Source: Botryllus schlosseri (Eukaryota). From it: a DNA stretch of 64,000 nucleotides. Below the pieces are notes generated by a model that saw only the letters and a program-made list of their open reading frames with translations, searched no databases and was not told the origin of the DNA. The translations under genes were made by a program, and so were the position numbers. This document shows positions 581 through 46,044 of the stretch, piece after piece. Within the stretch, counting starts at the first letter, position 1. Every line of letters begins with the position of its first letter. The stretch spans positions 18,724,001 to 18,788,000 of the forward strand of contig CM119385.1 in assembly GCA_051294905.1 (NCBI GenBank), read 5' to 3'.

Positions 581-1141
581 ATGCTAGCTGTTTTGATATA
601 TATTTTTAAATTTTCAATCGTATTAGACCTGTTAGTTAGGATTGTAAGCAGTTACAAGCTGCCGAGTGGAATCGACGAGAAGACTCTCAGTTCTAATGAA
701 CTGGATCAACAAACAATCCGTCTATCTCCACCGCAGAAATGTTTTATCAAATTGCGATCGCCGGGTGACAAAAGAAAATATCTGACGCCATATCGAGGTT
801 TGATTATGGCAACCAGCAGTCAAAAAGTCGCTTGGAACTGCCACTACATGCTCGAATACTATTCGGCAGAAAGTTCTGGAATCACATACATGCTTACCTG
901 GGGTGACAAAGTTGTCTCTGTATCAAGTTCGTCGAAATCATCCAGGCTTATCTTGCGCCGTCGCAATAGCAAGAGCCTGGATCCCAATGATATATTTACG
1001 CACGTATACGATCCCCGGAGTGGTGATACTGTATTGAGAACATTTGCACAGTCCTATTATATTAGTAGCAACTTTTTTCTCGTGGCACTTACAGCTTCAG
1101 GAAGGTATGCGGCTACCATTGAAGTTCTTGGTGGTCCATAA
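581..1141 (+). CDS. Secreted beta-trefoil-like (IL-1/FGF-fold-like) protein, family member A, 186 aa
   Basis: Uninterrupted ORF, hydrophobic N-terminus (KFSIVLDLL). Shares C-x-I-K (KCFIKL), W-x-C (WNCHY) and IFxHxxDxRxG (IFTHVYDPRSG) with ORFs at 3645 and 24018. The fold is inferred from strand pattern only. Confidence 0.7.
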   Translation: MLAVLIYIFKFSIVLDLLVRIVSSYKLPSGIDEKTLSSNELDQQTIRLSPPQKCFIKLRSPGDKRKYLTPYRGLIMATSSQKVAWNCHYMLEYYSAESSGITYMLTWGDKVVSVSSSSKSSRLILRRRNSKSLDPNDIFTHVYDPRSGDTVLRTFAQSYYISSNFFLVALTASGRYAATIEVLGGP

Positions 1142-1541
1142 CTGACGAAAGCCCGTATGTATATTTATTGGGCACCACTGTATCAACGCTGAACATTTCA
1201 GTGCTCGAATATATATCGAGATGGGTGCTCACTGCTCGTACATATCGAGATGTAAGCTTTTGGCCTGCATGCGCCGGTGTTTCTCGGCAAAAGTCTTATC
1301 GCCGCCGGTAAGCACGTAGGTATCTGTAGTATGCGTAGGCCGTGCACTTTGCCGAGTCACTTGTTAAGCGATGCTTGATGTCTTGTTATCAGATCAGTAT
1401 CAGTATATCCGATTGCCAAATAATCTCAAACTTTATTGAGTGCAGCGCCAATGCCACTTATAAAGATCTGTGGAATACACACCTAAAATATGGAAAATTT
1501 TGAAATTTGTGAAGTATGAATTTATTCCACTGGGATCATCA

Positions 1542-2099
1542 TTGGGCTGGGCAAAATCGAGTAGGAATACTACACTGCTTCGGTTCTGAATCGAGTACCA
1601 CTCATTATGACGTCATATGAGTATGCATTATGTGGAAAGTTCAAAGGCTACCTTTCATGCGACCACAAAGACAGCATTGCCAATTCTACGATAGATTACT
1701 AACCTCCATAGGTTATTAATCTATATCTCTACTCCACACAAAGATGTTTTGGTATTTTTTTTCGGCCATAGCCTACCTAATTCATTACGCTTTATGACAA
1801 CGTTGTGGGTTGTTAAGAATGTTTACCGCAGAAATCTCATTCCTACTATAACGTGAGTAGCTTCGTAGGCTAACGTGCTTTGGATGCTGTGATACAACCA
1901 ATCGAGATTTCAACGCTTCCATGTTAGGAAAGAAGTACCGAAACTATTTAATTTTCGTTGATAATGTAAATATGAATGCATGTAATTTCAGTACTCGAAA
2001 GAATCGTCTCTCGCTACTCGACTCGAATTATAATTATAATAATTATAATAAATTCTAATTCTAATTAATACTCGATTCGGATTCGAGTGCTCAGCCCTA
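1542..2099. mobile_element. Old MITE-like element with TAGGGCTG-type termini
   Basis: TTGGGCTGGGC...ATCGAG at left, CTCGA...CTCAGCCCTA at right; no TSD recognisable. Confidence 0.4.
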
Positions 2100-3129
2100 A
2101 TTATAATTCATTACATAAATCCGTTCCACGATTTATATTTTTGTGTCTCTATAATGAGATATAAATTGATTTGTACACCAGCATTTTTACATCGCTGTAG
2201 CATCTCCAAAATATCCCAGTTCGATATTTTTCAGTTATAAGTCAAAATAAATTGAATTTCATGAACAATTTGCATTGCGATTGTCAAATACTGTAGTACT
2301 TTTTGACGCAGCGCAGCTTAATGACTTAGGCGTAGATATGACAGAGCTTGACAAAGATCAGAATTTTGAGCCGATACCTGTATAAGACAAATTTTCCTAT
2401 AAAGTTGATAACATAAATCGATTGTTTTAGTTCGATTTATACAGTTTTATAGAGTTGCGTCTCAGTTGCCGGGCTTGGGTTATGAATATCAGAGAGCCTG
2501 TGATCGTTTCGCGTCATTAACATAATAATGTAGGCTCTTTGGGCATTAAGTTGTGAGTTTGTGGATAAATGGGATTGTGGACAAATAAACTCCTACGATA
2601 CTCACACCACATGAAACCGTGACCTTAACCGCCAGCGCATCAGAATCAACAGAACAAATTCTTGACAGCTAGCTCCGGTAATACATATCAATATCATATA
2701 TACTTAATAATTTAAATTTATATTTTACACGTGTAAAATAAATTAAATAAAGTCAAACTACCACAGGTATTGGTATGAATAGAAATGCAATCAAAAATTT
2801 AGGGAAATAACGTTTACATAAAACAACTTCGTCGACAGAATCGTTTCAAAAACTTCGTATCAGCCAGACATACGATGTCTAATCTCTCCGGGCGGTGCTT
2901 TCTCACAGTAATAAAGTGCATATATTGCTATCAAAATACATAATAAAGGTAAATTTTAGGTGAAAATATATTCAGGTAGACACTCTCAAAAGTACCATGA
3001 TAGTGCCCAATAACATTTAGTCAGCGGATGGCGGATAGGGTTGCATTTAAAACAAGAATCAATTTGAAGAGCTTCTTGGAGGTACAGAACTTCAATATAC
3101 AATTAAATAGTATATTCATATTGAAATGA

Positions 3130-3163
3130 ACCCGAATATTTTCGGCTGACACTCGTCAGGGGT
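3130..3163 (-). ncRNA. Minimal type I hammerhead ribozyme (mirror copy)
   Basis: Exact reverse complement of 3186-3219 in the left arm of the palindrome. Confidence 0.75.
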
Positions 3164-3185
3164 AATCGACTAGTTGCTGACGATT

Positions 3186-3219
3186 ACCCCTGACGAGTGT
3201 CAGCCGAAAATATTCGGGT
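3186..3219 (+). ncRNA. Minimal type I hammerhead ribozyme
   Basis: ACCC-CUGACGA-G(UGUCAGC)C-GAAA-AUAU-UC-GGGU: stem I ACCC/GGGU, intact CUGANGA and GAAA core, 1-bp stem II, palindromic stem III AAUAUU, cleavage predicted after C3215. Confidence 0.75.
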
Positions 3220-3644
3220 TCATTTCAATATGAATATACTATTTAAGAATCAATTTAAAACAAACATGTTACAGACGTGACGTCACAGTGGACTGACATT
3301 GACAATTGCAAACATAGGATCTATATGTCTCCTTTGACGACAAAGGCTTCCGACCCCTACGGTTCAAAAATTATCTTTAACCAGGACTACATCGTAATGT
3401 AGCATCTTTGCGGTCGGCGGTAATCATCATCAAACAGCCATTCCGTACCAGTGATCTATTTATCTATACGTGCTATAACTGTTGAAACGTCGACAACTTC
3501 GAGGTATCCAACCACTCCATATCGTATACGTCGACTATATCGGGTGCAAATCGTCCGTGTTAGGCTCATACTACATGTTTGTTTACATTTTTCAATGGCA
3601 TTATTCTGAAAACACTGTTTAAAGCATGTTTCAAACAAAGTGCT

Positions 3645-4223
3645 TTAAAACACCCCAATGACGGAAGTATTTGTACACTGCCGACATGAACTGCTGCAGT
3701 TTACACCCACTTCTGCTGGATTTCCATTTCCTTCCCATTTCATCAGGGTGCATTCATCGTCTGTTTTCAGCAGCCCTCCGTTCAACTTCTTGTCGAAAGT
3801 GTGGCGGAAGAGTATTTCTTTTGCATTGTGATCTTCATTACGCAACGGCGCCTCTTTCCAACCTTTTGTCAATCTATATCCTTTCCGTGCGTTTCTGTCA
3901 ACCGTTAGGAATTTGCGCTGTCTCCCCCGTTGCAATGAAAATGCGTACCTATGTACGTGAGGCTCGTCTGCTTGGACGTATGAGTGACAAGTCCAGTGAA
4001 TTGCAGGTCTCATCCACCCATATTGTATCGCTAATATTTCTTCGTTCGATTTGACGTGACAAGGGTATTCTCCATAGTAGATCCATTTACTTGGGCGTGC
4101 ACCCGTTCGCTCGCCTGATCGGAGCACCGGCGAAGAGGTAACAAACATATTGTTTCTGTAACAGGTCATATCCAATATGAAAATCAACCACATTTTCCCC
4201 ACGCTCAATTTGAAGTTGTACAT
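3645..4223 (-). CDS. Secreted beta-trefoil-like protein, family member B, about 192 aa (start MYNFKLSVGK)
   Basis: ATG at 4223 follows an acceptor-like CGCAG|AA. Motifs PCHVKS, HWTCHS, LFRHTFDKKLN match members A and D. Signal peptide weaker than in A and D. Confidence 0.7.
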   Translation of the reverse strand: MYNFKLSVGKMWLIFILDMTCYRNNMFVTSSPVLRSGERTGARPSKWIYYGEYPCHVKSNEEILAIQYGWMRPAIHWTCHSYVQADEPHVHRYAFSLQRGRQRKFLTVDRNARKGYRLTKGWKEAPLRNEDHNAKEILFRHTFDKKLNGGLLKTDDECTLMKWEGNGNPAEVGVNCSSSCRQCTNTSVIGVF

Positions 4224-4786
4224 TTCTGCGAGTAGTCTATATTTCTTCAATCAACAGGTATCAATGAGATGGCAACCACCCATCAATGTCCGCCTTTATA
4301 TGTATTTTGATTTTTGCCGTAAAAGGGTATATATTTGCACATTATTTTTAACGATCAGATGTTTTTTTGCCCCTATGGGAACTATAACCAGAATCGATAA
4401 GATTTGGTGTGGGAGTCCGGTCGCCTGATAGGCCGTCTGTATGACGAATATCGCTTGTTTGTTTAAACATCGCTCGTGAGTTGAAGGGGCTACTGATATA
4501 GCACCATTACTAAAAATAATCCTTTCCGTCAGAATTCTCAAGACGCACGCGACAGTGCATGACGCATTACATTGCAGATTCAAGTGGCGGAAATATAGGC
4601 TGGCGTATCTATTGCCGTGTCATCCAATTATCGTCTGTACCGTACACAAAGCATATATATTACGCAATCTATACTTGCGTATAGCGCATAGTAAGTTAGA
4701 ATTACTGCAACCATATGAAGGAATCTTCTTTCATTCTAACTTCGGACACACTCTTTGTCATTCTAGATCACACAAATGCACACATG

Positions 4787-5304
4787 TGTAACGTACTTTT
4801 GATCGTAGCCTAGTTACGATAGTACGTTATATTTGGCTCGATTAGAGACTTGGCTGTATCAACTTAGACTGATCGAGTAGCTTGCTAACTCTATTCCAAC
4901 CACTACCTAGTTTCTATGCGTCCTATTATCCGAGCCTACCCCTGAGACACAGTCAAAGTAATTCAAGCAATTACAGAAATAGGAACACAAATTTATCAAA
5001 TGAAAGTCCACGTCTACTTCAAGGCAGCGGTTACAAATCGGTTAACAACAGTTAACTCTCTAGCTAGGCTAAACTGATAATCTAAATGAATAACGACAAT
5101 TAACTCAATGATGCACCAAACGTCCAAACAATACAATAATCGAATCCCTTATACCCCTAATTTTGACTAATTTGAATCACTGACAAAAAACTTATCACCA
5201 GCACCAAGCCTCAAACTGATTAACAAATCACGCGGGTACGGATGACCGCTAAAGTCACTATTGAGCTCCAAGGCTCATGGACACTCAACATTTCTCGTGT
5301 TACA
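4787..5304 (-). repeat. 3' LTR of BEL element (518 bp)
   Basis: TGTAAC...GTTACA terminal inverted repeat, directly abutting the polypurine tract. Confidence 0.95.
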
Positions 5305-5402
5305 TACCCCCCCACAGATGTAGGAATCACATTGAGTACATCGAAATTCAACATCAAACAACGAGAAATAACAAATTCACAAAGAAACAACTTCATCGAA
5401 AG

Positions 5403-6038
5403 CTATTCAGCCTTACATATCAAACACAACTTTGTCACTGGCCTACGCAATAGACCTTGAGAAGACATAACCCAAACTTGGCGAACGCAGCCGAGTTTGT
5501 CTTTGATAGTTTCAGTTACCCTTCCTGTGAGCCACTTCCCTCTTGGCTGTGTATTATCAACTATGAGGACAATATCATTCTGTTGAAGGTTCTCTTTGGA
5601 AGAAACCCATTTCTGTCGCACTTGCAAAGTTTGCAAGTACTCTCGCTTCCACCGCATCCAAAATTGTTCGGTCAAGAATTGGACCTGACGCCAACGACGC
5701 CTTGTATAGCAATCTTTGCGATTAAACAACCCCGGAACAAATTCATCACCAGATCTTGCGAACAGTAGATGATTTGGTGTCAATGGTGTATCGCTTTGTG
5801 CGTCCATAATCACGGGAGTAAGAGGACGTGAGTTGAGTACCCCTTCAACTTCACAAAATATAGTAGACATTACTTCGTCAGTAACTATTTGATTACTCAG
5901 CAAAGAAGAAAGTATCTGCTTGGCTGATCGGATCAGTCTCTCGAAAATCCCTCCAAAGTGTGACGCAGTCGGTGGATTGAATTTAAATTCAATGCCTTCC
6001 TGTCGATAGAACTCTCCCATCTTACTCGAGTTACCCAC
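5403..6038 (-). CDS. BEL/Pao integrase C-terminal part (after second frameshift)
   Basis: FNPPTASHFGGIFERLIRSAK, LNSRPL, FWMRWKREYL are BEL integrase and C-terminal motifs. Confidence 0.93.
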   Translation of the reverse strand: MGNSSKMGEFYRQEGIEFKFNPPTASHFGGIFERLIRSAKQILSSLLSNQIVTDEVMSTIFCEVEGVLNSRPLTPVIMDAQSDTPLTPNHLLFARSGDEFVPGLFNRKDCYTRRRWRQVQFLTEQFWMRWKREYLQTLQVRQKWVSSKENLQQNDIVLIVDNTQPRGKWLTGRVTETIKDKLGCVRQVWVMSSQGLLRRPVTKLCLICKAE

Positions 6039-9000
6039 ACTTTCATTTCCTCACGTAGTATTCTGTTGGTCGCGATAAAATTACCGCCATTGTCACAGGT
6101 AAGAGACTTGAATCGACCACGACGAGTCATGCAACGTCTCAACGCATTTATACATGAATCTGCATCCATTGAATGGACAATCTCCAAATGAACTGCTCGA
6201 GAAGCCATGCAGGTCACAATTAAACCCCAACGTTTTGGAGTGCTTCGTCCTTGTTTAATGATATAGGGTCCAAAGTTGTCTATTCCGACGTGTGAGAAGG
6301 GAGCATCATCGGACATCAACCTTTCCTTAGGTAAATCAGCCATAAATTGAGTCAATGTAGGTGCAGATCGCTTTTTGCAAATCACACATTGACCGAGAAC
6401 CCGTTTCACAGCTGTTATTCCACCAACAAGCCAATATTTCTGACGAAGCAACGTCCAAGTGTGACTAGGCCCACAGTGGTGAGAAGTTTCATGATAATAC
6501 CTGATGAGTAGGTCAGCCAAATGTCCCTTGGGAATGATGATCGGACACCTTGTTTCAAATTTCAGAGTGGAGTTTCGCAGACGGCCAATCACTCTTAGTA
6601 CGTTATCGACAAGGCCAGGATTTAACTTCAATAAAGAAGTAGCAATTTTGTGCTTCCGTATAACTCTTTTCCCTGGTTGGTCGGATAACGACGAAAGGGC
6701 AGCGATTACAGAGTTGTATTGCTTACCCTGGACATATCGTATCAGCGACATCGCTGCTGCTTCCATTTCACTGGGTGACAGATTGCCGTTTAGAGACGTT
6801 TGACCTTTGTCTTTCAACCATTTTTTGAAGCGTATCATCCAAGCAGTGGCCTTCAAGAGTTTATACCACGATGAGAATCTGCCCAAGAACCGATCTAGTG
6901 GCTCTTGTGTTGCCTGTACTGCACTGGCAACGATAGTTTTTGTTGAAACCAATTCATCTGGTAACTGAGGTAAGTTGATTGGCATGACAGGCCACTCACT
7001 CTGTTCTTCATATAGAAATTCAGGTCCATCGAGCCATACCTTGGATGTAACCAAATCTTGAGCATCCATGCCTCGTGACGCATAATCAGCTGGATTCAAT
7101 TTTGTCGGCACATAGCGCCATTGCTGCGGTTTCGAACCTTCCTCAATTTTAGACAATCGATTCGCTACGAATGTTGGGAATCTTGTGGATGTATTGTGAA
7201 TACTCTGTAAAACACATGTGGAGTCGGACCAAAAATAGGATTCCAAGCCTTCCATATCCAATTCCTTCCTTAGACATTGGTCCATTTTCTCCGCCAGTGC
7301 TGCTGCCGTTAACTCCAGACGTGGAAGGGTGCATGCTGCTTTCAGAGGGCAAATTCTGGCTCTGGCCAATAAAAGAGTGCAGCGCACTTTTCCAGCACCG
7401 TCCTTTACTCTGAGATAAGATGCTGTGCCATACGCTGACTTTGATGCGTCGCCGAAATGATGCAACTGCTTTGATTTAATCCCACCCGCGGTATCTCTTA
7501 GCATGTAACGATGTACTCGCAATTCAGATAATCTTGACAGGGAATCCGTCCACTTGCTCCACTTGACTGCAATGTCATCTGGAATCTGTTCATCCCAGGA
7601 GATATCAATCCGACATAAGTTCTGAAAAAGTAATCTTGCCGTCAGTATGACAGGACTCACCAATCCCATTGGATCATAAATTGAGCATAAAATGCTTAAT
7701 ACGCCACGTTTGGTTTTTGGCTTCGATTTCAACTCTATGCGATACAAAAAACAATCTTCTTGCACTGACCACTGCACACCCAGAACACGTTCTGGTTTAT
7801 CCTCATCCAAATCAATGTTAGATTGCAACGGAGCTCTGTCTTCCATTGGTATATCCTCAAGAATATCGCTGTGATTGCTTATCCACTTGGATAAGTGGAA
7901 ACCCCCTTGGGCTACCAATTCTTGAGTCTGTCTTGCCATTCTTCTACCCTCCTCTACCGTGTCAGCCGTTAAGAGAAAGTCATCAACATAGACGCGCCTT
8001 TCCACATTCCTTGCAATTTCCGGTGGGTAGTTTCGACCATAGTCAATAGCTGTTTGCCTTAAGCAATAGTTTGCACAAAATGGGCTGCAACTGTTTCCAA
8101 AGTTCATCACCATCATATTATATTCAACTGGTGCCTTTGCAAGGTCACCTCCAGGCCAAAACAGAAACCGAAGTGTGTTCCAATCTTTTTTACTGACTTT
8201 AACCATGAGAAACATCGCAGTGATGTCTGCCAAGATGGCATACTTCCCTTGACGGAATCTCAGAAGAACACCAAGTAGGCTGTTTGCCAAATCTGCGCCC
8301 TGGAGTAGTTGTTGATTCAAAGATGTATTCCGAAATTGAGAAGCTGCGTCAAAAACTAGTCTCACTTTCCCCGGCTTTCTATCAGAAAGCACAGGTTGAT
8401 GTGGCAGATACCAGGTCTTGTCTTTCGGTGCATCAATTTCATTTTCCGGCACAATACGGGCGAAACCTTTATCGATGAATTTCTTCATTTCCTCGCAGCA
8501 TTTTTCTTTCAAGACGGAGTCTTTGGACAGTCTTTTGTGCAAGCAAGACAGACGTTTCTCTGCAACTGGTCGGTTGTTTGGAAGCTTGGGACATCCTGGT
8601 CGCCACAGTAGTGGGACCTCATAATGCCCATCCACTCTTCTTATACCGTCTTTTACACAATTGAGTGCATAACGATCTTCTCTAGACAAGACGGGTTGGG
8701 GTGTCAAGGCCACATCTTTGAAGTCTGTATTCCACAAATCTTCAATTTGTTCTGTCAGTACGTCTTGAATTTGAATAAAGTTGATAACATCGACTTCAGA
8801 ATCACTTGTGGTTTCCGGCTTTGGTCCGACTAAACTCCAACCCCATGGAGATTTCTGTGCAACAGGTTCCCCCGAACGACCTTCCCTTGATTCTTCAATC
8901 CACAATGATTCACTTACATTAGAACCAATTAATAAATGAACTTCATCACATGGAAGACTGGGAAATTCAATCCCACTCAAATGAGGGTAGCGTTCAATAT

Positions 9001-9604
9001 CCGGATTTTCCTTATACTTGTTGGCTGAAGCAGGGATTTTGTCAATTGACAGCACGTGCTTGAGATTGACTCGACTGTTGCCTTCCAGTGCTTCAATACT
9101 TAAATCAACAAACTCACCAGATTGAGTCTTTGTTCCGTGTATTGTCATTGAAGAGTAGGACAGTTTCCGCGTCTTGGCAGACAACATTTCTGTCAAAGCT
9201 TTGCTGCAAAAGCACACACTACTGCCCGGGTCCAAAAAGGCCCAAACTTCGAGAAGTATACCGCTCTGAGAATGAACTCTCACCGGAACAACATTCAAAT
9301 ATACTCCCCGTCCAAGGATCGTTGAGGCGAAGGATCGCGGACCAACAACAGAGTTTTGAGCCCCTTCTTCATCGGCGGCATTGTTCTCACTTCGATGCAA
9401 AAGGGTATGATGCTTTCCAGCTTTGCAAGACTGCACAGTACAAGCGTTTGGCCATCTACATGTTTTCGCGATATGTCCTGGTATAAAGCAATTCGCGCAA
9501 ATATTACTGACTCTGATCAGTTTATATTTATCCTCCGGGCTTTTCTTTGAGAATGAAGAGCAGGTTTTAAGCGAATGACTGCCATTACAGTCGGGGCATA
9601 CCAT
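5933..9604 (-). CDS. BEL/Pao Zn-knuckles + protease + RT + RNase H + integrase N/core
   Basis: CPDCNGSHSLKTC, CANCFIPGHIAKTC, AFLDPGS, YVDDFL, FGDAS, LPRLEL, WSDST, NPADYASRG, GIDNFGP, RAVHLE, CDNGGNF. Confidence 0.96.
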   Translation of the reverse strand: MVCPDCNGSHSLKTCSSFSKKSPEDKYKLIRVSNICANCFIPGHIAKTCRWPNACTVQSCKAGKHHTLLHRSENNAADEEGAQNSVVGPRSFASTILGRGVYLNVVPVRVHSQSGILLEVWAFLDPGSSVCFCSKALTEMLSAKTRKLSYSSMTIHGTKTQSGEFVDLSIEALEGNSRVNLKHVLSIDKIPASANKYKENPDIERYPHLSGIEFPSLPCDEVHLLIGSNVSESLWIEESREGRSGEPVAQKSPWGWSLVGPKPETTSDSEVDVINFIQIQDVLTEQIEDLWNTDFKDVALTPQPVLSREDRYALNCVKDGIRRVDGHYEVPLLWRPGCPKLPNNRPVAEKRLSCLHKRLSKDSVLKEKCCEEMKKFIDKGFARIVPENEIDAPKDKTWYLPHQPVLSDRKPGKVRLVFDAASQFRNTSLNQQLLQGADLANSLLGVLLRFRQGKYAILADITAMFLMVKVSKKDWNTLRFLFWPGGDLAKAPVEYNMMVMNFGNSCSPFCANYCLRQTAIDYGRNYPPEIARNVERRVYVDDFLLTADTVEEGRRMARQTQELVAQGGFHLSKWISNHSDILEDIPMEDRAPLQSNIDLDEDKPERVLGVQWSVQEDCFLYRIELKSKPKTKRGVLSILCSIYDPMGLVSPVILTARLLFQNLCRIDISWDEQIPDDIAVKWSKWTDSLSRLSELRVHRYMLRDTAGGIKSKQLHHFGDASKSAYGTASYLRVKDGAGKVRCTLLLARARICPLKAACTLPRLELTAAALAEKMDQCLRKELDMEGLESYFWSDSTCVLQSIHNTSTRFPTFVANRLSKIEEGSKPQQWRYVPTKLNPADYASRGMDAQDLVTSKVWLDGPEFLYEEQSEWPVMPINLPQLPDELVSTKTIVASAVQATQEPLDRFLGRFSSWYKLLKATAWMIRFKKWLKDKGQTSLNGNLSPSEMEAAAMSLIRYVQGKQYNSVIAALSSLSDQPGKRVIRKHKIATSLLKLNPGLVDNVLRVIGRLRNSTLKFETRCPIIIPKGHLADLLIRYYHETSHHCGPSHTWTLLRQKYWLVGGITAVKRVLGQCVICKKRSAPTLTQFMADLPKERLMSDDAPFSHVGIDNFGPYIIKQGRSTPKRWGLIVTCMASRAVHLEIVHSMDADSCINALRRCMTRRGRFKSLTCDNGGNFIATNRILREEMKVWVTRVRWESSIDRKALNLNSIHRLRHTLEGFSRD

Positions 9605-11139
9605 ATTAATTTCTTTAGGAGCGATACAACCCCCTTGTTATCTGTCGCCTCAAATTCTGCAGTTGTAGCATTGGCGTAATATTTGTTCCTTGTACCGGAT
9701 GCTCTTTGAGTGGATTGCTCCTTATTAATAGAATTATTCACCTTAGCCATGCTCGAATTTGAGCATTCCACTGCATTGGACACCATGACAACCAGATCAT
9801 GGAAGGACGGTGCAACATTTTGCTTTTCTTTTGTGGCTGATAATTTGATCCAGTCATTAAACAGGTTTGGTGGTAACTTAGATGCAATTTTTGCCAAATT
9901 GTCGAAATTTTCCAATTCTGAGTATTGATCCAAATTCTTCAGTGTTATATAACATTGCTGTAATTTCCTTGAAAACGCTATTAATCCTTCATTATCCCCT
10001 CGTTTCAGGTTAGGGTTGGCATTCAATTCTTCCATAAATTGACGGCCAATAGTAAAGGTCCGACCGTACGCGGTTTGCAGTATATGTTTTGCTGTTTTAT
10101 AGCCCTCATTTCCATCTATAAAGGATGCACAATGCAGAATTGATTCCTTGGCCTCTCGTTTACAGTATTGTAACAGATACGTCAATCGGGTATAACCATC
10201 TGAAACCCTGCTTTCGATATTTTTCTCAAAGTTTCGAATGAATCTTGTATATTCCTTTGGTGAACCATCAAACGTCAATAGTTCTAATTTTGGCAAATCT
10301 GAAGCGTTTCGCAGAGCCGTGGCAATCTCCATCAAATCACCACGATCTTCAATTTTTTGGGTGTGCCTTTCATTGGGCCTGGTTATTTCAGGCTGCGACA
10401 ACGTTTTCTGAAATTCTTGGCCTTCTCTTTGAGTCATGTTGCATCCCGGGTATTCGAAACCCTGCCCTTGTAACAATGAACCTTTCTCGTGCCTTCGTGA
10501 TGCTACCAGACTCGGTCTGGTTTCAACGACATCCTGTTCTTTGGGATTTGGATAAGATGGCGTTTCAAGAATGTCAATTCTGTCATCACCCAATTCCCAA
10601 GCCTCAACTTCAGCGCAGGCTAATTCATATTGGTGCGCATTTTTTTGGCGAGCCAATTTGCGTTCTACCTGTATACGCTCATCCTCCAGAGACTCTCTTT
10701 CTACTTGCTGTTTCAATTTCAAACGAGCCTTTTCTCTCAAAGCTATAGCTTTAATACGTCTCGAACTTTCACTGTCAATACTCTTGAAGGAGTATGAGGT
10801 ACCTGATCGAATAGATGAGCGACCGATTGACGGTGCTAAAGAGGGCTTGATACACTTGTTACAGCATTCTTGAAGTTTGTATCGAAATTCTTGATAATAC
10901 CGAAGCTCCCTTTCATAATCCTTGATGTGTGTTGTCTTTACAATATCATCCTCTATTCCCATAGTATACAGTCGTTGGACTGTAACATATTTCTCAAATG
11001 CACGTTCCAACTCCTTGCGGTACATTTGCAGGGTCTCATCCGGATTTAACATTTTTTCTTCAATAAATTTATATTGTTCTCCCAAACAAGCGAGCGCCTC
11101 GTCCAATTCATCCTTTGCAACAGGTTCCTTCATCGCCAT
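9517..11139 (-). CDS. BEL/Pao Gag (frameshifted just before the zinc knuckles)
   Basis: LPKLELLTFDGSPKEYTRFIRNFE...YLLQYC typical of BEL Gag; frame leaves the polyprotein at the G5 run 9630-9634. Confidence 0.9.
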   Translation of the reverse strand: MAMKEPVAKDELDEALACLGEQYKFIEEKMLNPDETLQMYRKELERAFEKYVTVQRLYTMGIEDDIVKTTHIKDYERELRYYQEFRYKLQECCNKCIKPSLAPSIGRSSIRSGTSYSFKSIDSESSRRIKAIALREKARLKLKQQVERESLEDERIQVERKLARQKNAHQYELACAEVEAWELGDDRIDILETPSYPNPKEQDVVETRPSLVASRRHEKGSLLQGQGFEYPGCNMTQREGQEFQKTLSQPEITRPNERHTQKIEDRGDLMEIATALRNASDLPKLELLTFDGSPKEYTRFIRNFEKNIESRVSDGYTRLTYLLQYCKREAKESILHCASFIDGNEGYKTAKHILQTAYGRTFTIGRQFMEELNANPNLKRGDNEGLIAFSRKLQQCYITLKNLDQYSELENFDNLAKIASKLPPNLFNDWIKLSATKEKQNVAPSFHDLVVMVSNAVECSNSSMAKVNNSINKEQSTQRASGTRNKYYANATTAEFEATDNKGVVSLLKKLIWYAPTVMAVIRLKPALHSQRKARRININ

Positions 11140-11376
11140 GACTATTTAACTATAGTCCAACCCTTCGAGTGCCGCTGAAACCTCAGTTGTAAACAATGCC
11201 TTTCAGTCGACGTGAACACTACAATAATTAGGTAGGAATGAATGGAATACCGGTACTCAATTTGAAGACTCACAAGTATTGGGGCAATCAGTTTTGCAAA
11301 CACTATATAACTGCAAAATACGGTATAAAGCTAATAAGAAGCTTTTAACCACAAACGAGTAGTGTTGTTAACTTAA

Positions 11377-11872
11377 TGTAACGTACTTTTGATCGTAGCC
11401 TAGTTACGATAGTACGTTATATTTGGCTCGATTAGAGACTTGGCTGTATCAACTTAGACTGATCGAGTAGCTTGCTAACTCGATTCCAACCACTACCTAG
11501 TTTCTATGCGTCCTATTATCCGAGCCTACCCCTGAGACACGGTCAAAGTAATTCAAGCAATTACAGAAATAGGAACACAAATTTATCAAATATATGAAAG
11601 TCCACGTCTACTTCAAGGCAGCGGTTACAAATCGGTTAACAACAGTTAACTCTCTAGGCTAAACTGATAATCTAAATGAATAACGACAATTAACTCAATG
11701 ATGCACCAAACGTCCAAACAATACAATAATCGAATCCCTTATACCCCTAATTTTGACTAATTTGAATCACTGACAAAAAATTTATCACCAGCACCAAGCC
11801 TCAAACTGATTAACAAATCACGCGGGTACGGATGACCGCTAAAGTCACTATTGAGCTCCAAGGCTCATGGAC
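11377..11872 (-). repeat. 5' LTR of BEL element, lacking the outer 22 bp
   Basis: Differs from the 3' LTR by 3 substitutions and two 4-bp indels by manual comparison; missing ACTCAACATTTCTCGTGTTACA. Confidence 0.95.
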
Positions 11873-14094: not shown

Positions 14095-14525
14095 ATAAAT
14101 ATTCATATTATGATTGATTGATGACGATATGGCGATAGATGAAAACCATATATTTGTGAAACACCAATGGTCGCAATAAACAATCAATGAATGAATATGA
14201 CTGGGTTGAAAATGGTAATAGAATTTGTACTATACGCAGTAAATTTGGAAAATTCTCAATAAAATCCATGCGTTATAGTGACCGTGTCGTGGTGGAATTT
14301 TATTTTCGCGTTAGAGATGCGCGTCATTTCTACTACCTGGCTTATCATAGGGAATGTAAACAGATACACTTATGCAACGTAGCCATTTTTATACAAGATC
14401 GGTTAATGGGAACACGACTAGGAAGTTCTCACGCGACTCAAGTAAAATATTCGAGAGATTTACCCGCATTTCCCTCCTGTGATTTTGATGGCGGCGGTAA
14501 ACTACACAAATTGTCGCTAAAGTGA
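14095..14525 (+). pseudogene. Probable pseudogene of the secreted beta-trefoil-like family (member C)
   Basis: WVENGNRICTIRS aligns with member B WIYYGEYPCHVKS; EFYFRVRDARHFYYLAY aligns with RYAFSLQRGRQRKFLTV. Upstream frame IFIL*LIDDDMAIDENHIFV resembles B's leader but has stops and a frameshift. Confidence 0.45.
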
Positions 14526-17500: not shown

Positions 17501-19280
17501 TGTATTATAGGCATATATTTTAGTCACATTTACAAATGTACTTTGAAGCGATGACAAGACCAATTACAATGGCGTGGTTGAGTGTGTATCCTAATTCTCG
17601 GTTTATTCCTATTCTAGCTTTGATTTCACTGCTTCGGATTCTGCCGCAGCTTTAATGAGTGCTATTTTCCTATCATTAGGTTATTCGATATGACGTAGGT
17701 CTGGTGCACATATCAATTAAATACCAATTTACAACTTGGAGGGCTGGTGTCGCCACCTGGTTAAGAAAGCAATGTAATCGAAGATTGGCCGTATTTTATT
17801 GCCTTAATGTGGATTCAAGTATCTAAACTTATGATGATTTGTATTTGCATTATATGTCTGTAGAAGATTATCTATATCCGTTTCCACACTTGTTATGACG
17901 TACTTTTAACCTCGAAAACAGATGTCACATTAGCACTACTCCGGTAACAATAAATGCACAATTGCATATATCGTATATGGATAGGATGAGTAACGACATG
18001 CATTGCGTATGGCTGAATTCCCAAAGCTCCGGTTGTAACCTGCAGTGCCTGCAATACGCATTTGCATTCCTTGATATATTGAATACTGCAATTTGGGCAG
18101 CCCGTAGTCGAATGGTGCCGAACAGCAGTGTCTGACATGTAGCTGCGACCCAGGTTTAGACCGCTGAAAGGTTTGGTGGGATTCGCGACCATCGACTTTG
18201 TTGGGTTACCATGCGGGATTTAGGCCCAACGCCCAACGCCCAACGGTTATTGGCTATTCTTTGCGAGTTTCGATGACAACGGATTGGTCATTTTAACTAT
18301 ACCTATGTGATTCCCTGTCCATATATAGTGACTTGCTTCGGATCGTGATATATATACTGTATAAATATGACTTGTGGTAGTATACGTCGTCTTGACTCGG
18401 GGCGCAAAAATCCATGCTCAAGAAGCACTAAGTTATGGGAAAGTGATCTTCAATAATAGGCTCTTTTGACGACAATTTATAATACTAATATCAACGTTCG
18501 TGCCTCTGGCATCTTACATACTGCTCATATGGTGACAATAAATGAAGGCTTTGACATCGACGCATATATGTATATAATTTCGAGTTGTGTAATGTGTATA
18601 CTGTATATGCGCACACCCCCAGAGTTGCATTAAACAGAAGCTTCACTTGGATAAGCGACAATGCCACCTATATGCAATCCAGCAATCCTTATCATAAAAC
18701 GCAGTGCGCAAGAAATACCGCACACCACACAGCAAATAAGTGTCGTTCGTTTATGCAACAGATGAAGCGATAAGAATTCATCCGCTAGGCTGCTTTACAG
18801 TAGATATTACGAAAGCAGATATAAATAGAACATAATTCAAATCACACACACATATATATATATATAAATAATACAAATAAATAAATATATCAGTTGAAAA
18901 TATGCATATTATTCTCCAAAGCAAGGGATAAGCGGCCGTATGTTTGTTGACGATGACATATCTTCAAATGCAATATAAGCGAAATTGAATGAAATAGGGC
19001 TCTCATACGATTCGCCTCAAAGACTTTTATCGATTTCATATTCACGATTTATTTGGTAAACATAGTGTCTTGTGTGAATCAGAAATATGTTGTAGCAGTA
19101 TATTATTCGGCCACACAATTTTTACAACTGATCATGTATAGTTTTTTCGCTAATATTTAAACAAAATGATGATTCTTGGCCGATATAAATATTAGATGTA
19201 GTTTTCGTGCGTATATACTCCGAGACCCGACCTCTAAAATTGCAAGCATATACGCACTTACGCAGCCACATGGTCTACCG

Positions 19281-19556
19281 TTGTTTGTGGTATTCATGGT
19301 ATTTGTCGACTACTATGGTTATTTACACCAGGCCAAATCTCATCATTTTTATTCGTAGATGCCGACTTGTATGTAGCACGGTCCACGTCTAGGTTTTTAT
19401 TAGACACCGCTTACACGGATGAGATAGCGAGGAGGAGCCTATAGATAAACCTCCAACACTTGGGTATAGGAATTTTGAAGTCGACCTCGTACGGACTCGA
19501 ACCCGCAAACCATTGGTGTCACGGCTGTGAATTATACCACTATACGCTTTCTCGCC
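19281..19556 (-). mobile_element. tRNA-derived SINE
   Basis: Head with A-box-like TAGTGGTATAA and B box GGTTCGAGTCC; 3' end CCATGAATACCACAAAC(AAC); related copies elsewhere in the window. Confidence 0.85.
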
Positions 19557-21002
19557 ATTCTACACATATTATGATTGTTATCATTATGAACCTTATACGC
19601 TATACACAGTGGTACTCACCCGGCGATCAATGCGCCACGGGGTCCATTTTGCGGTACCTGAAGGTCCTTGAGGACACTGGTGGTAATTAAAAAAAATATT
19701 TAATTGTTTTAGCGAAGATGCAGAACTTCTGGACAGGTCCAACAGCTCAAAACCTCAAATTGTGGTATAGCAATCAAAAAGGTGTCTCAAAGATTATATC
19801 ATTAATGATCATAGAACAAATATTTCGGGCCAAATTTCTGGAACTTCAAAATTTGTTCTGCTGTCGAATCAAGGACATTGGTTTTTAAGACAATATTGTT
19901 ATCTGCCACTCTGTCAGCGATAGGAAAAAGAGCCGTGCATCCTCTTTCGACAACATAATCTTATAACATAGACAATTACGGATCGATACAAATGCCATGC
20001 CACAAAATGTAGTAATTTTGTCTCGCTTGTTTGACAAATCCGTAACTGCAATAGCAAACAATTGGATGAATGATCTCAAATCATATCGTAATGTTAACGG
20101 TTTCTCGAATTGAATTATTGCGACGCCCCTCGCCAATCTCATCATATTCGAGTGTCACTTAGCTAAATCACGAGACAGTGTAAAATAAACGATACTATGT
20201 AAAATGCCGGAAGTGTAAGATACGTAATTGTTGTATTTTGCACCAATATCGAAGTAGGAAATCGGGAATAATCTAATCTGATTTGTGAAATCTCTGAAAT
20301 TGCCATCTCGCTGATAGATCACGCGGACACATGCAATTACAGTGTCATCGAAGATACAGATTTGTCTACGCGCAACTTTCAAACATTGATCAGTCTGTGT
20401 CAAGCTCACGGGGATTGCTGAAACTTCAAGTTATCGCCCTATAACTCCGGAACATCACGATCAAAAGAAGATCCCTTTATATTAACTTATTTATCACGAC
20501 TCGCCAAAAAAGTCGCTGAGTCAAAGCTAATTGTTGGTAAAAGAATTCGCATGATATTCAGTCCTCTGCGAAAACGGAGTTCAATCGTACACGATCGGCG
20601 CTTACACAATGCACATCCTCGATTTAGATATACCGTGCAATGTTCGCGCAGCGTTTGGTGCGATCGAACTGCTTAGCGTATTTGTGAATTGTTGTAATAT
20701 ATAATTAATAATAGTCGCAACTATAGAAAAATACGGTAATGCCAAATTGACATAATAGCTTGAAGAATTTTTCGAATCCCTATTCTCTCTATGGTATGCA
20801 ATGTTTCTCCTCTGTTATTTGTGGTTACGAGATAGCAGAACCTCGACTATTGTGAATTTTGGGATATACAATTTCTGGTGGCTACGACCAATTAGGTTTG
20901 ACAAAACATCTCTCTGATGTAGACAATTTTTCATTTACATTGTTAAATGGACAAGTTTGTGATTTGTGATACGATTGTTGAAATACAATGTTATTTCCCC
21001 TG

Positions 21003-21080
21003 CTAGTTATTGACGATTACCCCTGACGAGTGTAAGCCAAAAATATTCCGGTTTATTTCAATATGAATATATCATTAAAT
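21003..21080 (+). repeat. Degenerate copy of the hammerhead-bearing PLE-like repeat
   Basis: CTAGTTATTGACGATTACCCCTGACGAG...; GAAA core mutated to AAAA (21039) and stem I broken (21049). Confidence 0.8.
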
Positions 21081-21232
21081 TGGACAATTTTCAATGGTTC
21101 ACATTTGAGATTTCTAGTCCAAATCGAGCGCTGCACCTTGTTACTCTGAAGTCACTTCCGTACATACATCGCACTGAAGTATAGGAATACTATTCGTTTA
21201 ACTACTCATTCGTGGCACGAATGTATCACACC

Positions 21233-21660
21233 TAGGGTTGCATTTAAGACAAACGATGTTTTAAAACACTTTGTTTAAAACATGTTTTGAACAGTGTTTT
21301 AAACAAAAGCCTTCAAAAAAAAGTTGCGTTTTTTTCAAGTTGTAAAATTATGCCATAATTGTGTAAAGACTTTCCAGAAAACATGTTGTATGAGCCTACG
21401 GACAATAACCACCCGATTTAGCCGACGTATATCGATATGGGATGTTTGGAACCCTCAAATAGACGGTTCAACAGTTATAGTACAGATATTTCGTCAGGGG
21501 AGCTATATTTACTCTATATTTTCAAGTGTCAATGTCAATCCATTATGACGTCACAATTGAATGTTCGTGACGTCATAGCTTTAAAAAAACTTGTTTTAAA
21601 CTAGGGCCATGTTTTAAACATGCTTGTTTTTAATTGGTTTTTGTTTTAAATGCAACCCTA
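21233..21660. mobile_element. hAT MITE family A, complete (428 bp)
   Basis: TIR TAGGGTTGCATTTAA at both ends; perfect 8-bp TSD ATCACACC. Confidence 0.92.
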
Positions 21661-24017
21661 ATCACACCGGGTGTTCTGTCCGCCTTCGACCACACTCATT
21701 GATTTCCAGCTGTAGACTGCGGTTAGCGCGTTTCTGAAGGACATAGATTATTAAGTTTACTCAATTGAATCTGTGAACGTGAAAATCATTTACAAGCAAC
21801 CGTGTCTCTGATTCGGCAACGTTCGATATCACAGTGCATAACGCGGCAACACGTGACGATGCATAAACACACTTTCAGCATAATGTTAACAAATTCATAA
21901 AATAATCGACCTTATATAAGCCGGCAAATGCTACATTTTGAGAAGATATTTCGACTAAAATTGTCGAAGGTGAAATCACTCCTGATCACCATCAATTATC
22001 AAAATCCACAGCAATCAGGCCCTGCTGCTTAATTTGTTGCTTCAAAGGATACAATGACGACGTGATGATTCATTTCGACGCATAAAATCGTTATGTGATC
22101 TACCTCACATTTTTACACTACCTGTCGATATCAGTGACGTTGTCGAGAATAATTAACCTTCCTCGAAAGGAGGCTGTATGATCTTGAACTTTATGGAAAA
22201 CATTATATGATACCACCAAGTAATTGGTATTGCCGTGGAATTTTCTCACTAAATTGCTTTTCGAACATATTGCCACAGACGCGAATTCGTACGTGATCCA
22301 TAGCTCAATTCGTGTGTCCGTTACGCATTCTGACGCCAACGCGCATTAATATTGAAACATTTTTACAAGTCGGGATAATATCCACATGATCGTCCGCTTG
22401 CAGCTAAGCACGACAAACAGATAACTTAATCCATTGTGACTGAACAACTAAAAGACTGCTTCTGTGCCATTTACGCAACCGAAGCACGGGAAAGCTTTGC
22501 TGGCGTTATGTATAGTGCGTGCCTGTCACATTCCTCGAACATTAATCGTGTATCGATAAGATTAATCTAAATATCCGGACAGGACTACAGCGAAAGGGTT
22601 TCCGCACTTGCAATCCAACCAATCACGATGAGCAGTGGTCAACGCTCTACGTCGCCCCATCGAACACCGTGAAGACTGAAGCGCCACTTTAATCTTGTCA
22701 GCTATGGCGAATAGGCGCACACAGCAAGTCCCTTACGCAATATCCCTGAACTCTTTCAAATCAGCCCTGTATAACTTCAAATCATTGCAACGGTGATAGT
22801 ATTATATACTGCATTCGTTCACTAAGACAAAGGCTTTAGCTCCATTTAAATGTGCAATAAGGAAATTAAATGCATAGTATAAGCAAGGATCCATGGAAAA
22901 TAAATAAATAATATACGAAGGACAACTTATAAATTAAAATACGCATAATTTTGAGCTTAGTATGCTATAAATATGGCAGCAAGTACACTGGCGAACATAA
23001 TATAAAGTTGATCTATAATGCTTGGCAATATATTTTCATCAAACTAGACATCAATGGTATACGGAATTCCGTCATAATCAGCTTCAAGCTCAATTGCGGA
23101 TACATGGCCTGCGACCTATGAGAAAGGTCAACTTGACCAACAAAAGATGTCATGCGATTTAGTATAATCCCAATTCCGCTAAAATCGAGTTATAGCAGCA
23201 GGGTGACGGATTAATGAATATTAATCGCCTTATCATCTCACGGTTACACGGACATACAAAACAATATTAGCAGTTCTCGATTTTTAAGGTATTTGTTTAG
23301 GCGGTAAGTGTTTAAAATTATAACATTGCTTCAGAGTTCGTGAGAGTACTGTCGTTTCTTTGGTATTATTCTTGCATACGAATGGTTCTCCGAAAAGAGC
23401 TTGGAATGTTGAGGCATATTTGTTATAACAGCAAGTTCTTTGATCAGCTACACGACACTGTGAGAACGCAAATGCTGCTCAATATGGAATCCACGAGGAC
23501 ACTCTGTTTACGCTCCCGCACTATTAATAGACCATGGATTTCCGTACCTGTAGTGCTTATTCTTCATAAAGGATTTCAGGTAAATTCCTAATTTTACCAT
23601 GTACCCTTCTGTAATCCGATGGAAGACGTGAAGGTGGCAATAGTGATCTATTGATGATTCTAATTCGTGACAAGTAAATCGCTGTGAGTGATCAGCATAT
23701 CACAGTGCGCATTATCTTTAACATGTGTCATGGCGACTTGCATCGAGAACTTTGATGGAGAAAATCCTGAGAAATAAAAGCTCCGTATTCGTAGAATTTT
23801 CGAGTTCTGGTAGGCCACCAATTGGTCCTACATCCTTTGGGGTTGTACAAATGATTTTGGTAATTACCGACGTTGATGGCCGATGATTTCATATGCCAAT
23901 AGCGTAGTAAAATTTGGTGGATGGTGGGGGCCAATTTCTTTCATTTCTTTCGGCGCTATTTGCAATCTGTTTTCTAGTGGAACTTCTACAGTGTACTAGT
24001 GATTGTTTGCAACACAG

Positions 24018-24614
24018 CTATATGCATTTTGATTGACCCTGGCGGCATATTTTGAAATGCGAATGTCGGTTAGGTGGAAGCCGGCATCTCTTAACTAATG
24101 CCATTCCAAATAATCCCGGACGCATGTGTAGATAGCATTTTTTTTCTCCGGGAATAGATAGTTTCATCTGGTTTTCTCCCAGCTTTTCGTCATGGCCGTA
24201 CAGGAATATTGATCCAGGCACGGGGTTTTCAACTTGCATAGTCGCATTTGAAAACACTATCGCGTTTGTGGTGTTGGATACCTTTAGAAAATACTCTTTA
24301 TCTAGACCGTGAGTGGCGAAAACGTAGCCAGTCCGACCAAGTCTGCTGTACTCGTAGCAGTGCCACTCTGAGCTTCCCTTGTGTCCTCCCCACGGAATTG
24401 GATATTTCAACCAATATCTCAGAAAGCTTTTCTCGGCATACTTTATATGGCATCTCACTGGAACATCTGTGTTCAATACCCAACCGGTATTTTGAATGGC
24501 AATTTTACTACTATTGCGAGTCACCACGTATTCACCCCTTGCGCTTTGTATCGTAAGTGCTAATAGGCATAGTACAGTCGAGAATTTTCCACAGTTAGGG
24601 AATGAATTCGTCAT
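24018..24614 (-). CDS. Secreted beta-trefoil-like protein, family member D, 198 aa (start MTNSF)
   Basis: Clear signal peptide KFSTVLCLLALTIQSARG; ATG preceded by acceptor CTTCAG|AAATTCGCA; motifs RCHIKY, EWHCYE, IFLYGHDEKLG; N-glycosylation sequons NSS, NTT, NAT. Confidence 0.78.
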   Translation of the reverse strand: MTNSFPNCGKFSTVLCLLALTIQSARGEYVVTRNSSKIAIQNTGWVLNTDVPVRCHIKYAEKSFLRYWLKYPIPWGGHKGSSEWHCYEYSRLGRTGYVFATHGLDKEYFLKVSNTTNAIVFSNATMQVENPVPGSIFLYGHDEKLGENQMKLSIPGEKKCYLHMRPGLFGMALVKRCRLPPNRHSHFKICRQGQSKCI

Positions 24615-25879
24615 TGCGAATTTCTGAAGTCTTGTATCGTAATGATGTATGAGAATAGTACGATTCTTGGTTCTTTGGAGGCGTTCTGTACCGGTAGTAG
24701 TTTCCGTAGATATCTTGTGATTGTTTGCTATGATGGATTTGTAGTGCTGGCCTGAGTGGGATGAGTACATTGACTCCCCTTGTTACTCCCATGCTGTTGG
24801 ATCCAGGTTACTTCTTCAAGTGTGGTTTTACTCAGGAAATAAATAATCTGAAATAATTTACCATTCTGTTGGAATGTAAAACATTGTCATACATAATATA
24901 ATCGTTGTCATTCGAAAATTGCTTCTTGAAAAATCGATAATGGGTAAAACTCACGAATTGAAAACATAAGCAGAACGGCAAATTTTTCGCAATAGCGCAC
25001 AGTGGTTGCATGTTTCTCATCTCGCGTAGACCACATTTCTACTTCGGCCTATCATATACACACACAAAATTTCTGTGCGCTTATCTGGATCACTCATAGA
25101 TGAGTATACTCGTGATACGATCAATCTATACGTTAAATCGAAATTATTTGCTATCTAATCGTTCCCGTTCTCGCCTAAATTCGCAACCATATACTCGATA
25201 CAGTTTTTGCTGTGAATTCGATTAGTTATGACTTTCGGACTGAAACATTCCTTTATATACCCAACAGCTAATTAAATGGCTTCAAGTTTTCAACGTCGAT
25301 ATGCCTTTAGCGCTAGACCTTTCTCCAGACAGGTGGTCGTTTTTCATATAACCCTTACCAGCATTAATAGAAGCTCATAATCAGGTACGAGCCCGATACC
25401 GACACAACGAACTTTCAATTGCGGTTAGCAGTCGACTTTGCCCCGCCACATTGCTAAAATGAGACGATTTCACTTGTTTTATAGCTGGGTTGAGACCGGG
25501 GAACAGTCGCAACCCGAAACAAAAACAAAATTACCCGGAACACGTCAACAATTGATCTGCCGTTTGTTGGTAAGACTTACGAATTCTTCGGTGCCTCGTA
25601 ATAATCATCGTAATAATCGGAGTCGAAAATAGTGAAGATTATTGTCGTCATCAAAACTGATAAACGTTAACCGCAACGATACGTATTATATTCGGATCGG
25701 TGGAATAATACTTCATAAATGTAATTATGTACTCGAAGATATCTATATATATATAATTAATATATAGTCGATCATATACCTAATATCTGATTTGATCTGA
25801 ACGTCAACTAAACTTTATACTCCATTATAACGGATGGAAATGTTTTGGAAATGATCGCAAGACTAGATTGAGGAATTGT

Positions 25880-26154
25880 TGTTGTTGTTTGTGGTATTCA
25901 TGGTGTTTGTCGACTACTATGGTCATTTACACCAGGCCAATTTTCTTCATTTTTATTCCGAAGCTGCCGACTTGTAGCACGACCCACTTCTAGGCTTTTG
26001 TAAGACACCGCTTACACGGATGAGATGGCGAAGAGGAGCTCGGATATGCCTCCAAAACGTAGGTAGTAATTTTGGAGTCGACCTCGGTCGGACTCGAACC
26101 CAAAAACCATTGGTGTTGCAGCTGTGAATTATACCACTACACTATCTCGCCATA
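25880..26154 (-). mobile_element. tRNA-derived SINE, full length with TSD
   Basis: A/B-box head, (AAC)n tail, 13-bp TSD ATTGAGGAATTGT (25867-25879, 26155-26167). Confidence 0.9.
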
Positions 26155-26738
26155 ATTGAGGAATTGTACTAGACATTATCATGAAAATAATAAACTTAAT
26201 TACAATGAACTAAGCTGAAACTAACGAGCAACAAACGGAAACTTTTGAATTGTTACGGAAAAGATAGAGAATCATCGTCATTTGGTAACAGAGCGAAACC
26301 ATTTACACATCGAGGGTTTCGTCGTTTTGCAGTGATTACGTGGAGCACACCGAACGGAACAAACCGCCCCCGGTTTCGCGCCAACCTTATACGTGTTTTA
26401 TGTAATTAGTGACTGGCCAAGGAAATGGGTCACTCCGAAATCCTTGCAGTTGCGGACACCTTCTGGTTAGCTTGCGGAAACTCTGGGGAATAGCAGAATA
26501 AAAAGGCATACGTGCGTATTAGAGCCTTATTAGCAAAAGTCCAAGGAAATGAGTCAGAGAAAAATACTAATGTGTATAGCCGACCTATGGTTGCGATACA
26601 GCCAATCACCGGTTGGTTCTCACAATGACTCTGCCATTCCAAAGTTTTTATGTGTTCAGCACCTACCGGTACCTTTCCAGGCACTTCAAATATCAGTCTC
26701 CGGAGAGGGTCACTCAGTGGATATCAATTGCAGAAATA

Positions 26739-26873
26739 ATGAAAAGGATTGTTTGTGATGGAAAGTTTTCGACAGTGTTATGTCCCCGAATAATTTTCAT
26801 AGTTTCTAGTCGACATAATCCAACGCTAAAACCGAATGATGAAGGTATATTAGGTAGTGAGTGTTGTTTGTGA
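26739..26873 (+). pseudogene. Truncated paralog (member E) of the secreted family, signal-peptide region only
   Basis: GCAG|AAATA-ATG then MKRIVCDGKFSTVLCPRIIFIVSS; GKFSTVLC identical to member D with synonymous codon differences; stop after 44 codons. Confidence 0.5.
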
Positions 26874-38840: not shown

Positions 38841-39290
38841 GGGGGTTGCATTTAAAACAAGGGTGTTTTAAACAAATGTCATTTCAAAAAAGTGTTGATA
38901 TTTTTAAGTTATATAAGTTTGTCGTAATTGTTTGAATACTTTCGAAAAACATGTAGTATGAAAATTGCGCGAGAAATAGTCGATGTGTATGAAGGTTTAA
39001 AACCCTTGACAACATCGTCGGTTCAGCAGTCATATCCAGTAATAGATTACTTGAACCGAATGGATGTTCTGATGATAATAACCGCCCGCTGCAAAACTGC
39101 TGCATGACGATGTAGTCGTGGTCAAGGAAATTCTTTGGTCAATTAAGAACGTGTTTCGTCTATAGAGTCATATTGGAACTGTATCCTTTAATTGTGATTC
39201 TCAAGGAGCCGTAAAACAATGCCAATCAACTGTGACATCACAATTGAATATACGTGACGTCACGGTGACGTCACAATCTTAGTTCACCAC
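38841..39290. mobile_element. Diverged partial hAT MITE family A copy
   Basis: GGGGTTGCATTTAAAACAAG start and GTGACGTCAC block shared with 21233-21660. Confidence 0.55.
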
Positions 39291-45623: not shown

Positions 45624-46044
45624 TAGGGTTACATTTGAAACAAAAATCAATTCAAAACAAACATGTTTAAAACAAGGCCCTTGTTTAAAACATGTTTTTA
45701 TTTTTTTCAAGCCATGACGTCACGGATATTCAATTGTGACGTCATGATGGATTGATATTGATAATTGAAAATATAGGGTAAATAAAACTTTTTTGACGAA
45801 ATATCTACGTACCATAGCGGTTGAACCGACTATTTTGAGGGTCCCAACCATCCCATATCGTATACGTCGGCTATGTCGGGTAGTAATTGTCCGCAGGCTC
45901 ATACAACATGTTTATTTGGAAAGTAATTGCACAATTATAGCAAAATTTTGCAACTTAAAAAAAAAAACATTTTTTTAAAGGCCTTTGTTTAAAACACTGT
46001 TTAAAACGTGTTTTAAACAACCATTTGTGTTAAATGCAACCCTA
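45624..46044. mobile_element. hAT MITE family A copy
   Basis: TAGGGTTACATTT...AAATGCAACCCTA, inverted relative to 21233-21660; TSD eroded. Confidence 0.85.

Follow-up and report, generated by a model that had tools for sequence, protein, structure and literature searches.

A lineage-restricted family of putatively exported beta-trefoil proteins with an IL-18-like predicted shape at a conserved tunicate locus

Three intronless genes of one fast-diverging family

We analysed a window of 64 kb of eukaryotic DNA from Botryllus schlosseri (contig C15:18,724,001-18,788,000, 40% GC, within a 495-Mb assembly), in which three genes, referred to here as A, B and D, belong to a real, previously undescribed and lineage-restricted family of trefoil proteins that are predicted to be exported, have an IL-18-like predicted shape and lie at a conserved locus. 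Gene A (581-1141, plus strand) encodes 186 amino acids, with a hydrophobic leader at residues 1-24 and the trefoil domain from approximately residue 50. Gene B (3645-4223, minus strand) encodes 192 amino acids from the ATG at 4223 and has a weak leader; its open frame extends upstream to a TTG at 4250 (3645-4250, 201 amino acids from the TTG). Gene D (24018-24614, minus strand) encodes 198 amino acids and has, at residues 1-27, a classical leader that ends ...QSARG; a further in-frame ATG lies upstream at 24770 and is unlikely to be the start. All three are intact single-exon open reading frames (ORFs), found where the original prediction, made from the letters of the window, had placed them. 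By our estimate, frames of at least 186 codons are expected by chance only approximately 0.05 times per 64 kb at 40% GC, and therefore the three frames are not noise. Each family gene is one unbroken ORF, in this genome and in other assemblies. A and D are single-copy genes in this genome, and a single paralogue of B exists, on contig C1. The possibility that the ORFs are borne by a known transposon, which had been raised beforehand, was ruled out by this copy number of 1-2 and by their position outside repeats.

A, B and D are true homologues despite a pairwise identity among the family trefoils of approximately 20%. Pairwise BLASTP was marginal (E values of 0.002 for B-D, 0.11 for A-B, and 3.1 for A-D), and two-sequence hhalign profiles of the three were weak and were replaced by deeper profiles. 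In shuffle tests based on local alignment of the mature parts, p values were 0.006 (A-B), 0.001 (A-D), and 0.0003 (B-D), and the reversed-sequence controls were not significant. A search profile, composed of the sequences of A and its orthologue, of B and its paralogue, and of D, was run exhaustively against 1.84 billion representatives and returned eight proteins and nothing else, which sort into A-like, B-like, and D-like groups. P0001 (E = 1.6e-65) is the orthologue of A in another assembly, intact and 81-83% identical, and the E values of P0002-P0008 ranged from 2e-12 to 5e-5. In profile-profile comparisons with hhalign, the D group matched the B group (E = 7.9e-10, probability 96.5%), and the A group matched all others (E = 1.1e-8, probability 95.6%, 124 columns). 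Further, ORF A was the top non-member (E = 2e-4) when a profile lacking A-type sequences was compared with the six-frame pieces of the window, 2832 in number. We call the three genes homologous because the shuffle tests, the profile search, and the profile-profile comparison were all significant where BLASTP was marginal; the mutual homology and the restriction to one lineage that had been foreseen are both supported. Word-indexed homologue searches gave no match for B or D and one for A, and an exact sequence look-up in public assemblies gave no record for A or D. One family member originates from a marine-biofilm metagenome.

Shared ordered motifs, from which the relationship had first been suspected, proved to be true columns of the 12-sequence family alignment, namely C-x-[IV], W-x-C-[HY], Y-x-F, and, the longest, [IL]F-x-H-x-x-[DN]-x-x-x-G-x-x-[VL]-L-[KR]-T. 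The hydrophobic core and a pair of cysteines are kept across this alignment as well. Two other proposed likenesses hold in part. The leader string KFS[IT]VL is present in A and D, and its supposed third bearer, a short stretch termed remnant E, shares only eight leader residues with D and has no wider support. The string VALTASGR is indeed seen in the A subgroup but is confined to it and is not family-wide.

Two degenerate members had also been proposed (about 14100 and 26739, plus strand), and neither is supported by our analysis. The first, remnant C, corresponds to an unrelated 112-amino-acid ORF (14187-14525, plus strand) and was rejected as a family member, with E values of 16-32 against every family profile among the six-frame pieces, which is noise. 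Remnant E is an 18-residue stretch (26760-26813, plus strand) resembling the leader of D, in which the eight residues GKFSTVLC are identical (tblastn E = 0.06-0.23; 19/24 bases identical, shuffle p of approximately 0.01). Neither a wider DNA duplication nor a family-profile match was found for it in the window, and it is a tiny relic at most, possibly a product of chance.

A conserved locus, its transcription and its repeats

In another species (Logan runs SRR10746996-8), the family members P0007 and P0010 lie 2.8 kb apart on opposite strands, adjoined by a methyltransferase-16-like gene and a MIF4G gene. The only match of this methyltransferase in the B. schlosseri genome lies 10 kb upstream of gene A (C15:18,713,469-18,714,422), and the only match of the MIF4G gene lies 21 kb upstream of it (C15:18,702,305-18,702,736). 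Gene order is alike in both species, with MIF4G followed by the methyltransferase, by an A-type gene on the same (plus) strand, and by a B/D-type gene on the opposite (minus) strand. The gene tree agrees with synteny in placing P0010 beside the A clade and grouping P0007 with B and D. The shared gene order and the tree therefore indicate that the cluster is old and has been retained. The two neighbouring genes are 40-46% identical between the species and the trefoil genes approximately 20%; with about half the identity of their neighbours, the trefoil genes are diverging about twice as far, which agrees with the rapid divergence originally claimed for them. A second species (SRR25569784) has A-like, B-like, and D-like members, and a further A-like gene beside a 209-amino-acid gene on the opposite strand. 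Polymorphism in P0007 and P0010 across the three runs amounted to one synonymous single-nucleotide polymorphism, too little to be informative.

On contig C1, the paralogue of B (approximately 28,525,300-28,526,100; L005:1692-2530, minus strand) is 65-72% identical to B and is split by an insert of approximately 2.2 kb, whose ORFs resemble BED-zinc-finger/hAT transposase; the halves of the paralogue overlap by approximately 20 residues, which have diverged. The ratio of nonsynonymous to synonymous substitution rates (dN/dS), a check that had been suggested for the family, was computed for B against this broken copy and was 0.64. For birth-and-death evolution, as had been envisaged, there is thus one broken paralogue on another chromosome, but both supposed remnants inside the window drop out.

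For transcription, samples of 6-13% of four RNA sequencing runs were mapped on A and B; run X21 gave zero reads in total and therefore carries no weight. Coverage of A (13% of run X30, one library) was continuous from 641 to 2257 at a depth of 1-5x and then stopped, with first mates mostly on the minus strand. A poly(A) signal, AATAAA, is located at 2246-2251 on the plus strand, and coverage ends just beyond it. The extent of coverage, the strand of the mates, and the signal fit an unspliced plus-strand mRNA of approximately 1.7 kb, probably spanning 641-2270 (ends approximate) with a 3' untranslated region of approximately 1.1 kb. The concern that the ORFs might be untranscribed accordingly falls for A, which is weakly transcribed up to its poly(A) signal, and stands for B, on which no reads fell.

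These data bear on the idea that the family once worked and that its copies in the window are relics, with A, B, and D now untranslated or decaying. The lack of RNA reads on B and its weak leader, its paralogue broken by an insertion, the dN/dS of 0.64, the charged residues in the leader of A, and the transposons that fill the intergenic space would all be expected of relics. Nevertheless, we consider this improbable, as three frames remain intact at 186-198 codons when chance would provide so few, A is both transcribed and closely similar to an intact orthologue, and the hydrophobic core and the cysteine pair are conserved. Furthermore, a pair of one A-type and one B/D-type gene has been kept since a divergence over which the housekeeping neighbours fell to 40-46% identity. 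Of the three, D and A appear functional, and B may be silent or decaying.

Several other features lie in the window. A Penelope-like hammerhead pair (approximately 3054-3256, within a palindrome at 2993-3286) had an RNA coverage of 70-100x on both strands, against 0-5x for neighbouring genes, and its reads continue into many different flanks, as for a transcribed repeat family. A BEL/Pao-type retrotransposon (5403-11139, minus strand) comprises a 540-amino-acid gag-like ORF and a 1223-amino-acid pol ORF, the end of which is overlapped in another frame by a separate 211-amino-acid integrase-tail ORF (5403-6038). Both mobile elements sit between genes, not over them. A short dispersed repeat (3365-3652) abuts the stop codon of B and recurs at 21257-21483, 39041-39137, and 45806-46020 with 76-91% identity. 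In a GC-richer part of the window (54281-58746, minus strand), open exons of 429 and 388 amino acids encode a Ser/Pro/Asp-rich, apparently disordered protein. Elsewhere in the genome, two loci approximately 43 kb apart on contig C9 (15,025,585-15,068,854; L018 and L019) carry glycoside-hydrolase-6 exons with the hallmark motifs present, which suggests two cellulose-synthase-type genes in B. schlosseri. To our knowledge, among animals only tunicates have a glycoside-hydrolase-6 gene, as part of cellulose synthase; these exons fit an ascidian host.

Predicted fold, leaders and processing sites

An AlphaFold model of D (residues 28-198), built on the 12-sequence alignment, reached a pLDDT of 81.7 and a pTM of 0.79 with 11-12 strands. 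For A, modelled on five sequences, confidence was low (pLDDT of 40), and every element after the leader was a strand. Structural matches of the D model were beta-trefoils only, and IL-18 ranked first in four libraries. With Foldseek, the top 12 matches in the Protein Data Bank (PDB) were all human IL-18 (E = 2e-4; TM-scores of 0.63-0.67 by query and 0.70-0.73 by target). In the Swiss-Prot part of the AlphaFold database, the top ten were IL-18 (E = 4e-5), followed by FRG1 and IL-1 alpha; IL-18 was likewise first in the AlphaFold database clusters and in the ESM Atlas (TM-score of 0.69). Its lead over other trefoils was approximately 1.3 Z. Language-model neighbours of A, B, and D were trefoil families only (scores of 0.89-0.93), which we treat as leads only. 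As a prediction, the beta-trefoil fold originally proposed for the family domain is well supported, by the D model and by the agreeing language-model features of all three proteins, and the preference of the modelled fold for the IL-1 family is consistent but narrow. Taken alone, without any function, the family and its fold are in our view highly probable.

The VALTASGR string had invited comparison with fibroblast growth factors (FGFs), which, like the proposed family, are secreted trefoil ligands with signal peptides. That the three genes encode divergent FGFs is nevertheless very unlikely: the Pfam FGF model (PF00167) gave no match even at an E value of 10, FGFs rank beneath IL-1-family proteins, lectins, and fascin among the structural matches, and the string is a property of the A subgroup.

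A hydrophobic N-terminal leader is present in every full-length member, as judged by hydropathy and not by SignalP. Those of D and P0007 are classical, and that of the A orthologue is uninterrupted. D also carries three N-x-[ST] sequons for N-glycosylation. These features suggest that the members are exported, as had been supposed. RX[KR]R sites (RNRR, RQKR or RHKR) occur 5-10 residues before the first conserved cysteine in P0003, P0005, P0006, and P0010, a placement that would be the pattern of a furin-cleaved propeptide. Two cysteines are family-wide and may form a disulfide; A has only these two (C54 and C87), and the B and D groups carry extra ones, located in the C-terminal part in B and bringing the mature part of D to six.

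The same features could be read as those of defensive effectors. Immediately below IL-18, the matches of the D model were mostly lectins, toxin-associated haemagglutinins, and inhibitors, and the language-model neighbours included RicinB_lectin_2, Inhibitor_I66, clitocypin, CCL2-like, and CDtoxinA. Family and fold would then be the same, but the proteins would be secreted glycan-binding lectins or protease inhibitors of a sessile filter-feeder and not receptor-binding signals. Such effectors commonly take the classical secretory route, which is unusual for pro-inflammatory IL-1s (PMC13736523). On the other hand, QxW is absent from every member, Pfam Ricin_B_lectin gave no match to the family, and the Pfam lectin and inhibitor searches were blank save for a weak Fascin match (E = 0.007). 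Ricin-type lectins and the botulinum haemagglutinin HA33 have (QxW)3 repeats, and the family also differs from them in having no evident threefold sequence repeat. Moreover, IL-18 heads every structure library, and a propeptide of the furin type immediately ahead of the domain is found more typically in processed ligands. We therefore regard lectins or inhibitors as a serious but second-ranking possibility. Even if it is correct, the genes would constitute a trefoil-fold family new in sequence, and a clear case of a locus that persists while its genes have diverged roughly twice as much as those around it.

A candidate extracellular ligand family and its relation to known systems

Our preferred interpretation is that A, B, and D belong as paralogues to an old family, small, intronless, and diverging very fast, that is apparently restricted to ascidian tunicates. 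In each protein, a trefoil domain of approximately 130-170 residues would follow a signal peptide and, in some members, a propeptide that ends with RX[KR]R. Once exported, and in some members freed of its propeptide, the domain would act as a soluble extracellular ligand of a cell-surface receptor, that is, as a cytokine-like signal. Rapid divergence is typical of immune ligands. The homology, fold, leaders, conserved locus, and weak transcription of A were computed, and it is from these that we infer the ligand role. For the full statement, an exported, IL-18-shaped trefoil family acting as an extracellular ligand, our estimated probability is roughly 0.6.

A number of observations weigh against this interpretation. 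The putative cytokine role is our own reading of computed features. A confident model was obtained for D only, and that of A is poor. The leader of A is imperfect, carrying K10, D16, and R20, as is that of B, with seven apolar residues, and none of A, B, and D has an RX[KR]R site. In the sampled RNA runs, cover of A was low and B received no reads, and the dN/dS of B against its broken paralogue indicates relaxed constraint. The Pfam IL1 model (PF00340) gave no match at E <= 10 for any of the 12 members. Finally, among the best-scoring candidates, TIR-domain matches lay on contig C13 and none near the cluster. On C13, three TIR-domain exons occur within 18 kb on the same strand (3,075,887-3,093,673), two of them with in-frame stops, and they may be a tandem TIR array.

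Invertebrate IL-1 proteins (IL-1anc) combine a PDZ domain with an IL-1 trefoil, have no signal peptide, and carry an (F/L)ES motif (Fontenla-Iglesias et al. 2026, PMC13736523). The IL-1 trefoil is spread over 3-5 exons whose intron phases are conserved, and the cross-animal survey of 2026 found no IL-1anc in three tunicate genomes, those of Ciona, Botryllus, and Styela (PMC13736523). Unlike IL-1anc, the A/B/D family has hydrophobic leaders and no PDZ match; unlike genes of the IL-1 superfamily, its genes are intronless. Processing of IL-1 is of the caspase type, whereas the family has a classical leader and, in some members, a furin-type site. The IL-1 superfamily signals through Ig-TIR receptors, and no linked receptor gene was seen at the family locus. 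The PF00340 model matched nothing in the whole genome, and family profiles compared with PDB sequences found no IL-1 chain and noise only, such as Ig constant domains (E = 0.035). The conserved [FL]ES is absent from the family, with one member having LES at a non-homologous site; the family L-[KR]-T may occupy the position equivalent to (F/L)ES. By structure, the closest neighbours are IL-1 family members, with IL-18 first in four libraries. Because this structural likeness is the only one of the defining features that the family has, and its sequence, motif, exon, and leader features differ, we do not file the family under IL-1. A description of the family was not found in Pfam, PDB sequences, or the literature searched.

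It is nonetheless conceivable, though we think it doubtful, that the family represents the IL-1 superfamily in tunicates, in a form adapted to classical secretion and to activation by furin and rendered intronless by retroposition. If true, the failure of searches for leaderless PDZ-trefoil IL-1s in tunicates would be accounted for, and the family would contain the molecules responsible for the never-cloned 'tunicate IL-1-like' activities. Among living animals, none are more closely related to vertebrates than tunicates. The sizes reported for the activities described by Beck, Raftos and others are similar to those of the mature proteins of the A/B/D family. Like the proposed family, these activities are secreted immune-type factors of tunicates; they were never sequenced, and no molecular link joins them to the family. 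The work on these uncloned activities, of 1989-1996, is cited in two papers (PMC9020223, PMC13736523), and the activities are described as never characterised molecularly (Boraschi 2022, PMC9020223). For IL-1-like activities that have been on record in tunicates since 1989 and never tied to a gene (PMC9020223), the family now offers syntenic and intact candidate genes.

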